From assembly GCF_009834535.1 (NCBI RefSeq), contig NC_045696.1, positions 56,544,001 to 56,608,000 of the forward strand: a stretch of DNA of 64,000 bases, written 5' to 3'. The DNA comes from Camelus ferus (lineage: Eukaryota). This document shows positions 11,068 through 53,689 of the stretch, in pieces. Position 1 is the first letter of the stretch; every line of letters begins with the position of its first letter. The translations under genes and the position numbers were made by a program. The notes below the pieces were generated by a model. The model did not search any database and had not been told where the DNA came from. It was given only the letters and a program-made list of their open reading frames with translations.

Positions 11068-11422
11068 AGAGGGAGGGAGGAATGAATAGATGGAGCACAA
11101 GNNNNNNNNNNNNNNNNNNNNNNNNNNNNNNNNNNNNNNNNNNNNNNNNNNNNNNNNNNNNNNNNNNNNNNNNNNNNNNNNNNNNNNNNNNNNNNNNNNN
11201 NNNNNNNNNNNNNNNNNNNNNNNNNNNNNNNNNNNNNNNNNNNNNNNNNNNNNNNNATTGATTATACCAAATATGCCACACTGATGAGGGATATTGAGGG
11301 TAGGGGAGTATATATGTGTGGGTGGGGAGGGCTATGTGTGAACACTCTGTATTTTCTGCTCAATTCTGTTGTGAACCTGAAACTGCTCTAAAAGAATAAA
11401 ATCTATTAAAAAATAGTAATAA
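11068..11422 (+). mobile_element. 5'-truncated L1MB-like LINE 3' end with 16-bp TSD, containing an assembly gap
   Basis: L1M 3' UTR text (ctcaattctgttgtgaacctgaaactgctctaaaagaataaa). TSD taaaata(t/c)gctgaatt at 11052-11067 and 11423-11438; TTTT/AAAA endonuclease-type site. Confidence 0.85.
11102..11256. other. Assembly gap (155 N)
   Basis: Run of N. Confidence 1.
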
Positions 11423-12740: not shown

Positions 12741-13857
12741 ATTTTTTATTTCATTGCGAGTAAAAACAGATTTTGTTTCCAGTTCAACCAACAATGTAGT
12801 AGTGAATTAAATGAAAGTTCAGTATAAAGTGTATTTTTTTTTAATCGTGAAGGCCTTGCAGGCTTTTATGACTTTTCTGGGCAGCGTCAAGCTGTGATGC
12901 TAAGGGTGGGGCTAAACTGTAATATGAAGAAAAAAATTCAAAGAGGGAGAATAACCACCCACTAGGGAGCTATTTCTTTTGTAATGTACATTCCATTTCT
13001 TCTCCCTCATGCTTTTTAATTCCTTCCACATTTCCTGCCATAATTATCAAATGTTTGGTTTCTGACCTCACTTTTCTGGAGACTAGAGCTCAGGGAATTT
13101 AGAATTGTTTATTTTCTGTCCATAAACCTTTGAGTTAATGGAGGGGCTTGTGTGTAAAGGGTTTGTTGGTTTGTTTGTAGTGTCTCAGGAAGGTCACTGG
13201 AGTTGAAAAGAAAACATTACCAAAAAAGCGCTGAAATACTTTGACTGGAAACGCAGAGCCCTCAAAAGAGCAGAGCAATGGATCGCTCATACTTGCGCAA
13301 CACTAGTTTAAGAAAAAACTGAGATGTTTTAAAGGCCGTTATATGGCTCTGATAATAACACAAAATCCGAGGGCACTTTACAAAGAAAGGGAAAAAATCA
13401 GGGAATCATAATCTCACTTTATAAAAGAGAAAAATATATTCCTCCCCGAAAGAAGAATCTCTTGAGACTGCCCTCCCCCTCGACCGACTCGGAAGGAAAA
13501 AGTCTCCAACTATTCTCAATTTCCTCTTAAGTGAAGGAAAGAACTCAGGAGCCTTTTTGAACTCAGCTCCTGCTCTTGTCGCCGCCTGCGTCCCAATCGG
13601 CCCAGCTCGTCCCCCACCCCCCTCCCTCCATATTAGTCGCGGTGAGGCTCCCGCTTACGGCCCAAACTACTTTTCCCGATTTTAAGGTTTAAGTTTCGTA
13701 AGTAGCATTTCTGCACGGAGCGCCCCCCTCACCCAGCGATGGAAACTCCCAGTCCCACCCGGGGAGAGCATCCCCAGGACGCACGTACCACCCGCGCGAC
13801 GCACAGACCCCAGTGGCCCCGGAGCCTGAGTTCGGACCTCCTCAGAGGCTCACCTAC

Positions 13858-13914
13858 CTCGGCGTGGACCCAGGCGACCGCCACCAGCGCGAGCGCGAGC
13901 CAGCGTGTCCACAT
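13858..13914 (-). CDS. FSTL1: Follistatin-like 1, exon 2 (signal peptide, [19 protein letters not shown])
   Basis: Minus strand reads ctcttccgcag|ATG TGG ACA CGC TGG CTC GCG CTC GCG CTG GTG GCG GTC GCC TGG GTC CAC GCC GAG|gtaggtgag. This is a 57-nt phase-0 exon with canonical AG/GT, and the peptide matches the mammalian FSTL1 N-terminus (human [21 protein letters not shown]). Confidence 0.96.
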
Positions 13915-14073
13915 CTGCGGAAGAGAGAAGAGCAAGATTGAAGGCACCGGGCCCCGCGCCGACCCCGGAAACTTCTTCAGGTCCCGGAGGCTCGCCCCCT
14001 CCGCCCGGCCACCCTCGGCCGCCCAGAGGGGTCGGGCCAGTGCACTCGGCTCCGCGCCGCACTCCGCTCTCAC
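13915..14073 (-). other. FSTL1: FSTL1 intron 1 (159 nt)
   Basis: GT at 14073-14072; pyrimidine tract and AG at 13916-13915. Confidence 0.88.
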
Positions 14074-14170
14074 CATGGTCCGGTCCCGGTCTCCGGAGGG
14101 CGTGGGGCAACGCGGCTGCAGCGAGCTCTAAGGGAAGGTGGGAGCTTCGCGGATCGCCAGCCTCAGAGGA
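14074..14170 (-). other. FSTL1: FSTL1 exon 1 (5' UTR ending in ATG); 5' boundary approximate
   Basis: Minus strand ...gctcccaccttcccttagagctcgctgcagccg...ggaccggaccATG|gtgaga resembles the recalled human FSTL1 5' UTR and ends in a GTGAG donor at 14073-14069. Confidence 0.85.
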
Positions 14171-25857: not shown

Positions 25858-26000
25858 TAGAACATGGGACTCACAATTTAATAATATATAATTTGGTATG
25901 ATTTTATGCCCTGAATTTTGGGGGGTATTAGCTTTTGATAGCTAAAAGCCAAGCTTTTGGATCTCAAAACATTTTTTCTTGCAAAGCCTATTTTGAAATC
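25858..26000 (+). repeat. Copy A of a ~145-bp local duplication
   Basis: Collinear with 26757-26904 plus 27311-27328. Confidence 0.88.
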
Positions 26001-26756: not shown

Positions 26757-27328
26757 TGAAATATGGGATTCATAATTTAATAATATGACATAATACTAAT
26801 AGTATGACATGATTTTTATGCCCTGAGTCTTTTTGGGCATTAGCTTTTGATAACTAAAACTGAAGCTTTTAGATCTCAAAACTCTTTTCTTCTTTGGCAA
26901 AGACTATTATGGTCTGAATTATGTCTCCCCCCAAACTCATATGTTGAAGCCCCAACCTCTAGTATCTTAGATGTAACTGTCTTTGGAGAAAGGGCCTTTA
27001 GAGAGATGATTAGGTTAAAATGAGGCTTATTAGGGTAGGCCCTAATCCAATCTGACTGATGTCCTTATAAGAAGAGGTTAGGACACACAGGAAGAGCCAG
27101 TGATGTGCACACACACAGAAAAGGCCACGTAAGGACATGGAGAGAAGGCAGCCACCTGAAAGCAAGGGAGAGAGGCTTCAAAAGAAACCAAACTTGCCAA
27201 CACCTTGATCTTGGATTTCCAGCTTCCAGAACTGCGAGAAAATAACATCCTGTGGCTTAAGCCATCCAGGCTATGGTACCCTGTTATGGCAGCCCTAGCA
27301 AAGTATAATGAGGATTATTTTGAAACAC
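26757..27328 (+). repeat. Copy B of the ~145-bp local duplication, interrupted by MLT1B
   Basis: atgggattcataatttaataatat...tttttatgccctga...attagcttttgata...aagcttttagatctcaaaac...gcaaagac[LTR]aggattattttgaaa. Confidence 0.85.
26905..27310 (+). mobile_element. MaLR LTR MLT1B-like, full length
   Basis: tattatggtctgaattatgtctccccccaaactcatatgttgaagccc...gttatggcagccctagcaaa; degenerate TSD aagac/aggat. Confidence 0.9.
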
Positions 27329-29416: not shown

Positions 29417-29590
29417 NNNNNNNNNNNNNNNNNNNNNNNNNNNNNNNNNNNNNNNNNNNNNNNNNNNNNNNNNNNNNNNNNNNNNNNNNNNNNNNNNNNN
29501 NNNNNNNNNNNNNNNNNNNNNNNNNNNNNNNNNNNNNNNNNNNNNNNNNNNNNNNNNNNNNNNNNNNNNNNNNNNNNNNNNNNNNNNNNN
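29417..29590. other. Assembly gap (174 N)
   Basis: Run of N. Confidence 1.
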
Positions 29591-36623: not shown

Positions 36624-38373
<1,750 letters not shown>

Positions 38374-50684: not shown

Positions 50685-51204
50685 AACAGTGGAAAGATAT
50701 TTTAGGATAGTGGCTTACAGTAATGGTTGGCATTCTCAGTGTTCCTTCCTGTTACATGTTTCTTCTCATCGTTTGGATCTCTTCCTTTCCTCCCTGGCAC
50801 TCATATTTCTTACCGCCAACCTACCTCCTGCACTAACCCAGCTGCATAAAGGGATAATGGGGCAGCCTTTCTTATGCTTCTAGTCTTAGGTTGCCCGGGT
50901 TGTATGCTCTAGAGAAGGAGACAGCAGAAAAGCCAGGCAACAGACGTGTGGCTAGTGGGCTTACGAAGGTGAGATGTAGGAGAATGCAGTTGGTTGGTGC
51001 CTGAAGCGTGGGGATAAGGAGAACCAGGTCAAAGGATGGGGAGAGTGAAGGGAGGGAGAGTAGAGGGAGACCAGAGGGAAAGGGTTAATGGCGTGGGCAC
51101 CATCAGGGCACCAAGCATAGAAGAGGCAGGGAGCAGAGCGAGGTAGGAGTGGTCTGGGAGTGGAGAATGGCTGAGGAAGCTGCGGGCAGGAAGCCTGACT
51201 GGCA

Positions 51205-52790
51205 AAGCAAAGGTTCTTTCAGTGGAGGTCTATGGATTATAAATAGTTTTAGTTTTGTGTGTCTGAAAATATCTTTATTTTCTTCATCACTCAAATTGTG
51301 GTTTGGCTGGATATAACAGTCTAAATTGAAAGTTTTGTTCATTCAGCATTTTTGAAGACTGCTTTTTCTATTGTTTTGTAGCATTTAATGTTGCTGCTGA
51401 GAAGTCTGATAATCTGTGGGTTTTTTTTTTTAATAATCTATGTTTTCTTTCTGGCACATTTATGATTTCCTTTAATTCTTTATGTTCTAAGTTTCATGAC
51501 AACATTCCTAGGTGGGGATTTATTTTTATTTATCCTTTTGTTACTAAGAGTGAACTTTTAATCTGAGGATTTATGTCTTTTTTTTTTGCTCTGGAGAATT
51601 CTCAGCCATTACTTTTTAAAAATTTTTTAACATGTTTATATATCCTCTAAGAAGTGGCTTTGGATCCCACAAATGGGATCAAAGCAACACAAAACACATC
51701 TCTAAATATTTCTTTTGTCCTCTCAGCTATTACTTTTATGTGAAGTAAATTATGTTGCTTCTCTGTCATTCTGTTCATTCTTTTTTTCTGGGACTCATAC
51801 TATATTCATGTAACCACTCTTTTATACATTTAAATTCTTTGTCTCTGTTAAATTTGGGGTGAATTCCTCAATTTGAGCTTTCAGTGACCAGTACTTTATT
51901 GAGTCTAGAGCTCATTCTATTAAATAATTATAAAATTTCAAGGGCTATTTGAAGAGTAGTTCTATTTGGTTATTTTGCATAGCTATCTTTTTTGCTTCAT
52001 TTATGCCTGTTTTTGTTCCATAATGGCTGGTTCTTTTTATAACTGTCATTCTCTTATTTATCTCTTTGAGCTTCTTTGTTTTAACCAATTTGTTACACTA
52101 TTCATCACAACTAATTTCTTTCTGGATGAATTTATGTTCTGATTTCACATTTTATTGACTATTTTTTTAAGGGTTAGTTTTCTCAGATCTTGGAACTTTG
52201 ATTTGCAAGCTTATTTTGAGTTGAAATGCTTTTGTTGTTATTTGTTTTCAGTCTGCTTCTTTCCTCTCTTCCTTCCCTGTGTCTACTTCTTTAAATCACT
52301 GGTTTTATGATTGTCTCTTTACATGACCCCCTGGAATTCCATTTCAGAACCAGATGCTCTAAAGGCAGTTCAGGGCTCTTGGCCACAGTGATGTCAGAGA
52401 TACCTCAGGTCACCAGGCCAGTATGTGGCTTGGTTCTTTTCCTGCTTTCAAGACTGGATCTGTGTCCTCTTATCTCCCTAGCTACACAGACGCTCCTAAC
52501 TCTTAGCTTAGGCAGATTCTGACTAAGGCAATGATCCTAATCCAGGTCCCTTGTCTCAAGTGGAGTAGACTTCCAGTTACACAGCCATCTCCACCTAATT
52601 TTGGATGTGGAGACCGGCAGGTTCATGGCTTTACCAACTCACTCTTCGGCATTTGTTGTTTTTTCTCATCCATGGAGAGATCAATCTTTTTTTTCTCTCC
52701 CTTTGAACTCTGAAATATAATTTTTATTTTCTTTTTTATAGTTTACCTTTGCCATGTTATTTGGGGGAAGACCAACAAGGTCAAAGCGTG
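51205..52790 (-). mobile_element. Old L1M remnant (ORF1/5' region, antisense)
   Basis: tctgaaaatatctttatttt...gttgctgctgagaagtctgat...ggagaattctcagccatt...T-rich antisense text. Confidence 0.75.
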
Positions 52791-52809
52791 AACTTCCTGT
52801 CCCTGACCC

Positions 52810-52928
52810 AGATTTTTAAAAACAGCTGCTGGACTTCTGATGAGTAGAGAAGTGTGCCCACGCCATTAGCCCTTTCCCTTTGGTCTCTCTCTACGTATCA
52901 GAAGTCCAGCAGCTGTTTTTAAAAATCT
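52810..52928. repeat. 119-nt fold-back with perfect 32-bp inverted arms
   Basis: 52810-52841 agatttttaaaaacagctgctggacttctgat is the exact reverse complement of 52897-52928. Confidence 0.98.
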
Positions 52929-53689
52929 CCCTTGCCATGCTTTCACTTTTCTGTGACAAAGTGACCATTAATTAGTTCATAGGCATGGCTTGTAATGTTT
53001 AAGGAATGAATGGGAATTTAGCAAAGTTAGAATGACTTGCTGATTCTAAAAATAATAGGGCAAGATTTTCTGTCAAGGATTAAACTATTCTTACTAGATC
53101 AAGAGCTCAGTACCTGAACTGATTTGTAAATTCTGTGGTCCCTCAGGATCTAAAATCCAGAAAAAGTTAAGTATATTCCCTTAAGATCTTAAGAAAGATA
53201 TTTAATCATAGGATTTTAGAGATCAAAGGAACACCAAAGATTATATATTGTAGACCTCTCACTTCTGGACCTGGAAAAGGAGACTTAGAGAAAGCTTTTG
53301 TTCAAGGTTACATGGTATTCTGGTAGCAAAGCTAGAGCTTGAATAGTTGGGTTCTCCTAGGTTTATATTTCTCCAACAATGTTGTCCGTAGCACATATCA
53401 GAAGTGATACAACTAGCATATTTGATAAATGAGTTTTACCGCGATGCTTAATTATTGACAAAGTGGAGGCATTTCACAGAACAAATCACATCCAGGTTTC
53501 TTCAGGTCTCAGTTTCAATCGACTGTGTTTCTGAAATGCAAATATGTTTATACTAGCATTTCTTGCTCCACATAGAAAGCAAACTTAGCTGGGATGCTCC
53601 TTATTCTCTCTTACACATGGTCCTATTAGTACCCAATTTAGAAAAATATAAAAGAATAAAAAATAAGAATAGAAATGATAATAGAAGTA

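Follow-up and report, generated by a model that had tools for sequence, protein, structure and literature searches.

A 119-bp fold-back in Camelus ferus as a probable mosaic scar of microhomology-mediated template switching

Hairpins that arise by self-templated synthesis have been described in detail at induced chromosome breaks in yeast. After resection, a break end pairs with itself at a 10-bp inverted microhomology to give a hairpin whose loop measures 41 nt; synthesis then lengthens the hairpin end by 10 to over 150 bp before it is joined to the other end, with 0-5 bp of microhomology at the join (PMC11724301). Yeast breaks also receive templated pieces that come from distant, fragile loci. 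Complex insertions often consist of two such pieces, inverted and drawn from one locus, whose junction has a median microhomology of 6 bp (PMC11724301). Snap-back synthesis has been described for SD-MMEJ and for polymerase theta (PMC5728401, PMC4912351).

Template-switch hairpin events are common in mammalian lineages (PMC8794818, PMC10710096). In primates, more than 6,000 pri-miRNA-like hairpins arose from replication template switches, and at least 18 of them became miRNA genes, with promoter availability as the limiting factor (PMC10710096). Short units with inverted ends have also been recorded as transposon candidates. A camelid transposon survey with a structure-based finder listed a few dozen MITE candidates, some of which had 10-bp duplications (PMC8605555).

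The fold-back of Camelus ferus described here was found in a window of 64 kb, that is, the whole stretch of DNA that was analysed. It is a new instance of a known mutation class, and we consider that it is probably a mosaic scar of microhomology-mediated template switching. It resembles the products of SD-MMEJ, of polymerase theta and of the yeast Pol delta-NHEJ hybrid in its inverted flank copy, in a short inverted microhomology that may have served as primer and in its loop of tens of nucleotides (PMC11724301, PMC5728401, PMC4912351). It also resembles fold-back break repair in its pieces from other loci, its inverted double pieces and its final join with little microhomology. Unlike the yeast and polymerase theta insertions, the camel fold-back is a germline evolutionary product that is known as an end state alone. 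Its self-copy (32-41 nt) and its upstream copy (41 nt) would both rank among the longer of the products typical of polymerase theta.

The fold-back shares with the Löytynoja-Goldman template switches a perfect inverted repeat that can be made in one step from neighbouring sequence and a stem-loop of pri-miRNA size (PMC8794818, PMC10710096). The classic Löytynoja-Goldman model uses one local template at most tens to hundreds of bases away, whereas the camel fold-back has a second template 1.75 kb away and a 12-nt patch. Löytynoja-Goldman calls are defined by ancestral reconstruction, whereas the camel case is read from one extant sequence.

Structure and genomic setting of the fold-back

The outer arms of the fold-back are exact reverse complements (32/32). 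The initial annotation had claimed perfect 32-bp arms, which was borne out by sequence reading, a repeat finder and a script re-check. The script also confirmed its claim that a further 7 bp pair after two mismatches, giving a 41-bp stem and a 37-nt loop; GTAGAGA pairs with TCTCTAC in this inner stem (Table 1). The full arms are thus 41 nt each and 95% complementary, with a spacing of 37 nt, and the overall length is 119 bp. The arm-versus-arm self-match had a BLAST E value of 1.6e-13. A search of the whole 64-kb window for inverted repeats of 24 bp or more within 400 bp gave the fold-back alone.

Table 1. Features of the fold-back and of the upstream sequence related to its loop (positions in the window)
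Feature	Position	Length, strand or pairing	Remark
Left arm	52810-52841	32 bp	Holds self-complementary TTTTTAAAAA (52813-52822) and CAGCTG
Junction patch GAGTAGAGAAGT	52842-52853	12 nt	Includes inner stem GTAGAGA (52844-52850)
Loop and right inner stem TCTCTAC (52888-52894)	52854-52894	-	41-nt inverted copy of 51060-51100
Dinucleotide GT	52895-52896	Opposite GA 52842-52843	The only interruption of the stem
Right arm	52897-52928	32 bp	TTTTTAAAAA at 52916-52925
Putative upstream source of the loop	51060-51100	+	Part of the 240-bp stretch with the strongest purine skew in the window
CATCAG	51101-51106	+	Directly after the upstream source; its complement CTGATG is 52837-52842

Folding predictions showed high stability on both strands. 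The RNA fold of the plus strand reached -68 kcal/mol (z -12.9) and that of the minus strand -70.2 kcal/mol (z -10.9), and the DNA fold reached -42.4 kcal/mol (z -12.9). None of 200 shuffles was as good in any of the three cases. G52842 pairs with T/U52896 in the RNA and DNA folds, leaving 52843/52895 as the sole unpaired position. A cruciform or a pre-miRNA-like hairpin had been proposed for this locus. The in silico folding potential agrees with that proposal (z about -13), but no Rfam family matches: Rfam 15 gave no hit for the whole window at the gathering score, and the matches of 52700-53050 at E up to 10 were at chance level (best E 0.2-7).

The window has a G+C content of 42% and a CpG observed/expected ratio of 0.19, and it contains no Alu, in line with a mammal other than a primate. 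The fold-back is intergenic and lies about 39 kb from the putative first exon of FSTL1. A signal-peptide-like start, MWTRWLALALVAVAWVHAE, was found at 13729-14076 on the minus strand, in a CpG-rich and GC-rich region at about 13.7-14.8 kb that also holds a (CA)n run at about 14.4-14.55 kb. We take this start to resemble exon 1 of follistatin-like 1 (FSTL1). Later FSTL1 exon motifs were not found in the window. No ORF longer than 32 codons crosses the fold-back. Exact-match searches with four ORFs near the fold-back and one homologue search gave no match, and intergenic mammalian ORFs are seemingly not on record.

Two other features of the window were annotated. An Arf-family coding sequence is present at 36672-37213 (+) in two overlapping frames (Pfam PF00025, E 1e-30 and 2.5e-11), and it is an intronless, frameshifted ARF1/ARF3-like processed pseudogene. 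The sequences 25902-25976 and 26814-26888 are 75-nt direct copies with 83% identity, 912 bp apart; no other direct repeat family in the window reaches 60 nt.

The loop, its upstream match and the junctions

Read in reverse complement, the loop together with the right inner stem (52854-52894) matches 51060-51100, which lies 1.75 kb upstream. The match is gapless with 38 of 41 positions identical (E about 4e-11), and the three differences between the copy and the upstream sequence are all transitions. Its edges are sharp. When the 2.8 kb that precede position 52300 were compared with the 2.7 kb that follow it, no other significant similarity emerged, and the window holds no further copy of the upstream stretch.

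The composition of the two sites showed which of them the shared sequence resembles. The loop copy has a GC fraction of 0.56 and a purine fraction of 0.24 on the plus strand and is foreign to its local flanks, which have 37% G+C and no purine skew. The upstream stretch has a purine fraction of 0.76 and a GC fraction of 0.59 on the plus strand, and the 100 bp on either side of it have purine fractions of 0.74 and 0.71 and GC fractions of 0.53 and 0.60. The arms resemble the local flanks of the fold-back, with a GC fraction of 0.37 in the 41-nt left arm (52810-52850) and 0.34 in the right arm. On these compositional grounds, the upstream site appears to be the source and the loop the copy, because the 41-mer matches the upstream composition and differs from the flanks of the fold-back; the arms would be locally derived.

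The upstream stretch lies within a tract of 241 nt (50960-51200) that is 73% purine on the plus strand. This matches the maximum for 240-nt segments across the window (0.733), and only 0.2% of such segments reach a purine fraction of at least 0.72. Purine-rich tracts can form a triplex or an R-loop, which might account for the tract acting as a template. Within the tract, the 8-mer GGGCACCA is repeated directly 11 nt apart (51095 and 51106).

The loop contains a distant inverted copy, and at least two templated pieces are therefore required, not one simple local switch. New sequence that is reverse-complementary to nearby DNA, as expected of a template switch, was found for the arms (32/32) and for the loop (38/41). 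A template switch was one of the two origins offered in the initial annotation. The present results support this option and extend it, with the loop as an inverted copy from 1.75 kb upstream and with 6 nt of candidate junction microhomology.

This microhomology is given by the hexamer CATCAG and its complement CTGATG, which spans the five innermost bases of the perfect left arm plus G52842. At G52842 the left arm agrees with the upstream source and not with the right arm. The coincidence of the 6-mer has a chance of about 2e-3, allowing for both sides and a few positions, and CATCAG/CTGATG is a candidate switch-point microhomology as judged from these letters. The complement of CATCAG and the upstream-derived copy are now 11 nt apart in the fold-back. 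CATCAG as the switch point therefore requires a second small insertion. The 7-bp pairing of GTAGAGA with TCTCTAC could have primed the fold-back.

The 12-nt patch between the left arm and the loop (52842-52853) has several partial matches. Its first 8 nt are identical to the upstream source at 51058-51065 in direct orientation, 7 nt complement the right inner stem, and its last 6 nt are identical to AGAAGT of the right arm. AGT (52851-52853) and GT (52895-52896) are without a clean template, and no single path cleanly explains the patch and this GT; the origin of the patch is only partly explained. No other significant source for the patch or the arms was found within 3 kb on either side. The outer joins have no microhomology; a direct 3-mer, CCC, is present on each side, which has a chance of 1/64.

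The right arm crosses the junction between the upstream-derived sequence (TCTCTAC) and the arm, and the left arm repeats this junction reversed. One arm was therefore copied from the other during or after the placement of the upstream piece.

Two further similarities were rejected. The sequence GCTGCTGAGAAGTCTGAT at 51392-51409 resembles GCTGCTGGACTTCTGAT of the arm, with 7 + 5 matching bases around a differing centre; as a source of the arm it was at chance level in local-alignment shuffle tests. A diverged tandem duplication of about 180 bp was hinted at by two short co-linear direct repeats (D1, D3), and 64 of 300 shuffles scored equally. No further significant co-linear homology was found between the fold-back and upstream neighbourhoods.

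The direct repeat and the transposon-like parse

The same locus had also been parsed as a 93-bp MITE-like unit within a duplicated 10-mer. The arithmetic of this parse is right: TTTTTAAAAA (52813-52822) is followed by a 19-mer (52823-52841), a 55-nt core, the 19-mer again (52897-52915) and TTTTTAAAAA (52916-52925). It is also right that deleting the insert and one copy restores a palindrome, with AGATTTTTAAAAATCT, a 16-bp palindrome, as the notional empty site. What does not hold up is the treatment of the duplication as a feature separate from the inverted repeat. TTTTTAAAAA reads the same on both strands and the inverted repeat extends 3 bp past it (AGA/TCT); the apparent target-site duplication is therefore no independent evidence. 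The locus looks like a direct repeat because the arms carry a self-complementary 10-mer at their outer ends. Duplication lengths of 0, 2, 4, 6, 8 or 10 bp all fit, and each of them yields the same empty site.

The probabilities of the two readings of the 10-mer were compared. A genuine 10-bp duplication would need a perfect 16-bp palindromic target, with a probability of about 1.5e-5 without target preference, whereas the copy model needs just a 10-bp palindrome near the end of the native arm, at roughly 1%. This figure also counts against the template-switch model, in which a 10-bp palindrome within 3 nt of the outer end of the arm is a roughly 1% coincidence if it has no role. The TTTTTAAAAA motif is present four more times in the window.

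It is unlikely that the fold-back is a small non-autonomous DNA transposon (MITE) with terminal inverted repeats of 19 bp (or 26 to 41 bp). In this reading a palindromic AT-rich site would have received the element, with a duplication of 2-10 bp, and the upstream 41-mer would have to be a fragment of another copy or filler caught in gap repair. The anatomy fits this account: a short core lies between terminal inverted repeats, and identical 10-mers flank the unit at an AT-rich palindromic target. Many cut-and-paste families favour palindromic AT-rich targets. In these respects the fold-back is like known MITEs (MADE1, the miR-548 family), which are short units with terminal inverted repeats, an AT-rich palindromic site and a hairpin-forming transcript. 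The terminal inverted repeats are 32 bp when perfect and 41 bp at 95%, but such repeats are common to any fold-back. The candidates of the camelid survey had duplications of 2, 3, 8 or 10 bp (PMC8605555), and a structure-based MITE finder would call the fold-back locus a transposon.

The core argues against a transposon. In a MITE the core belongs to the element, but 41 of the 55 core bases here are an inverted copy of DNA 1.75 kb upstream. The core is 93% identical to this compositionally native DNA, and the match has sharp edges that do not reach the supposed terminal repeats. The transposon reading is disfavoured because the core of a mobile family is not expected to be of local origin. Unlike MITEs, the fold-back thus has a core from adjacent unique DNA and a duplication that is inseparable from the inverted repeat, which runs 3 bp farther, and no family members were seen in the window. 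Its ends are not known to fit any superfamily. The ends of piggyBac after TTAA begin with CCY, whereas those of the fold-back read AAACAG. In hAT elements, CAG ends go with 8-bp duplications and not with 10, and Mutator-like elements with 9-11-bp duplications have long ends. We know of no superfamily that pairs a 10-bp duplication with termini like those of the fold-back. According to PMC8605555, DNA transposons in mammals are believed to have shown no activity for about 40 Myr except in a few lineages.

A second copy of the 19-mer with up to 3 mismatches was absent from the 64-kb window, which is too small to be decisive. Among metagenome contigs it had 15 matches, each single and 19-21 nt long; they fell in microbial sequence rich in GC and CpG, none had an inverted pair, and these matches are chance. 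The 19-mer string was not found, as DNA or as RNA, in the literature searched. The proposal of an unclassified tiny transposon thus finds no support in the duplication, which is not independent, in the core, which is local, or in the window, where the 19-mer has no second copy.

Two other origins of the insert were rejected. L1-endonuclease cleavage and retroposition at a T5A5 site does not apply, as the insert has no A-tail beside the T run. A hairpin-opening (P-nucleotide) origin was rejected with 37-55 nt present between the arms.

Proposed origin, age and possible use of the hairpin

We propose that the fold-back arose by template switching during the repair of a chromosome break, by fold-back or 'snap-back' synthesis and then end joining, or at a stalled replication fork. 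In the presumed ancestral state, one of the two 32-bp arms would have been native flanking DNA, and a single event may have added the rest. A free 3' end would have copied 41-43 nt, inverted, from the purine-rich tract 1.75 kb upstream. The switch between the tract and the arm may have used the 5-6-nt identity CTGAT(G)/CATCAG. The strand would then have folded back and copied its own flank to give the second arm, and its end would finally have been ligated to the other side, with hardly any microhomology or none. Additional short switches, at least one, may account for the patch 52842-52853; alternatively, a small switch may have extended the stem later. The seeming 10-bp target-site duplication would be explained if the copied flank happened to carry the self-complementary TTTTTAAAAA.

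Two orders of these steps fit about equally. In path A, the left arm and GTAGAGA would be native. The nascent strand would have copied the upstream sequence; once its CTCTAC end had paired with GTAGAG, the resulting hairpin, with its loop of 37 nt, would have been extended through the arm. In path B, an intermediate with 32-bp arms joined through CATCAG would have come first, followed by a small stem-extending switch.

The notional empty site can also be read as the place where a finished piece was captured. An inverted fragment might have been formed elsewhere by template switching (in a flap or in extrachromosomal single-stranded DNA) and captured whole at a break in the palindrome AGATTTTTAAAAATCT, in which case neither arm would be native. 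We regard this as rather improbable. The empty site would be a clean 16-bp palindrome, capture would give the palindrome a role as a fragile site, and inverted double fragments are captured at breaks in yeast (PMC11724301). Fragment capture nevertheless requires a third source for the 19-mer, and none was found within the window. The arms share the composition of the local flanks, and a 10-nt staggered fill-in is not expected of ordinary end joining.

The initial annotation had regarded a template-switch product as recent and had pointed to the perfect arms. The divergence within the locus does not support this, as the loop differs from its source at 3 of 41 positions and the stem at 2 of 41. 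The sum is 5/82, or about 6% (Poisson range roughly 2-14%). The divergences of stem and loop are compatible with a single age, which at usual mammalian neutral rates is probably millions to tens of millions of years. The perfect arms are unremarkable in this light, as a run of 32 bp free of mismatches would be expected with a probability of about 0.09 at 7% divergence.

These differences also bear on the authenticity of the sequence. Perfect short fold-backs are a known class of artefact of amplification and of some library preparations. An assembly or chimeric-read artefact is nonetheless extremely unlikely here. It would copy its templates exactly, whereas the loop has three transitions relative to its source and the stem has a dinucleotide mismatch. 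The fold-back also sits in continuous unique sequence, far from the N runs. The window contains two such runs, 11102-11256 (155 bases) and 29417-29590 (174 bases).

The geometry of the predicted stem-loop suits a microRNA precursor, with a 41-bp stem, a 37-nt loop and -68 kcal/mol. If transcribed, the product can fold into a long hairpin, any use of which is hypothetical. We consider it very unlikely that the hairpin, whatever its origin, is now a functional miRNA-like small-RNA gene with its pairing kept by selection. An RNA stem of 41 bp with one mismatch and an apical loop of more than 10 nt is near the preferred pri-miRNA geometry, and template-switch hairpins of primates have become miRNAs (PMC10710096). 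The promoter is, however, the limiting factor, and thousands of such hairpins are inert (PMC10710096). The site is intergenic and distant from the nearest recognisable exon (about 39 kb), no Rfam family matched even at E up to 10, and the identity of the stem is statistically no better than that of the loop to its source. The more far-reaching possibilities are likewise quite improbable. One is a camelid-specific hairpin from a two-template switch that is transcribed and processed to small RNAs upstream of follistatin-like 1, that is, a de novo miRNA whose source template is still recognisable. The other is an unclassified tiny transposon with recent mobility in a large mammal, of which the fold-back would be the first copy sighted.

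The fold-back by itself opens no new question. It is of value as a clean natural example in which the native arm, the purine-rich source and the junction microhomology would all be readable in one 2-kb stretch. It also calls for caution in transposon annotation, as an inverted repeat whose ends carry a self-complementary motif looks as if it were flanked by a target-site duplication. The camel locus suggests that fold-back and distant-template insertions, as seen at induced yeast breaks and in cancer cells, also shape mammalian germlines, where template-switch scars may provide raw material for new hairpin RNAs.
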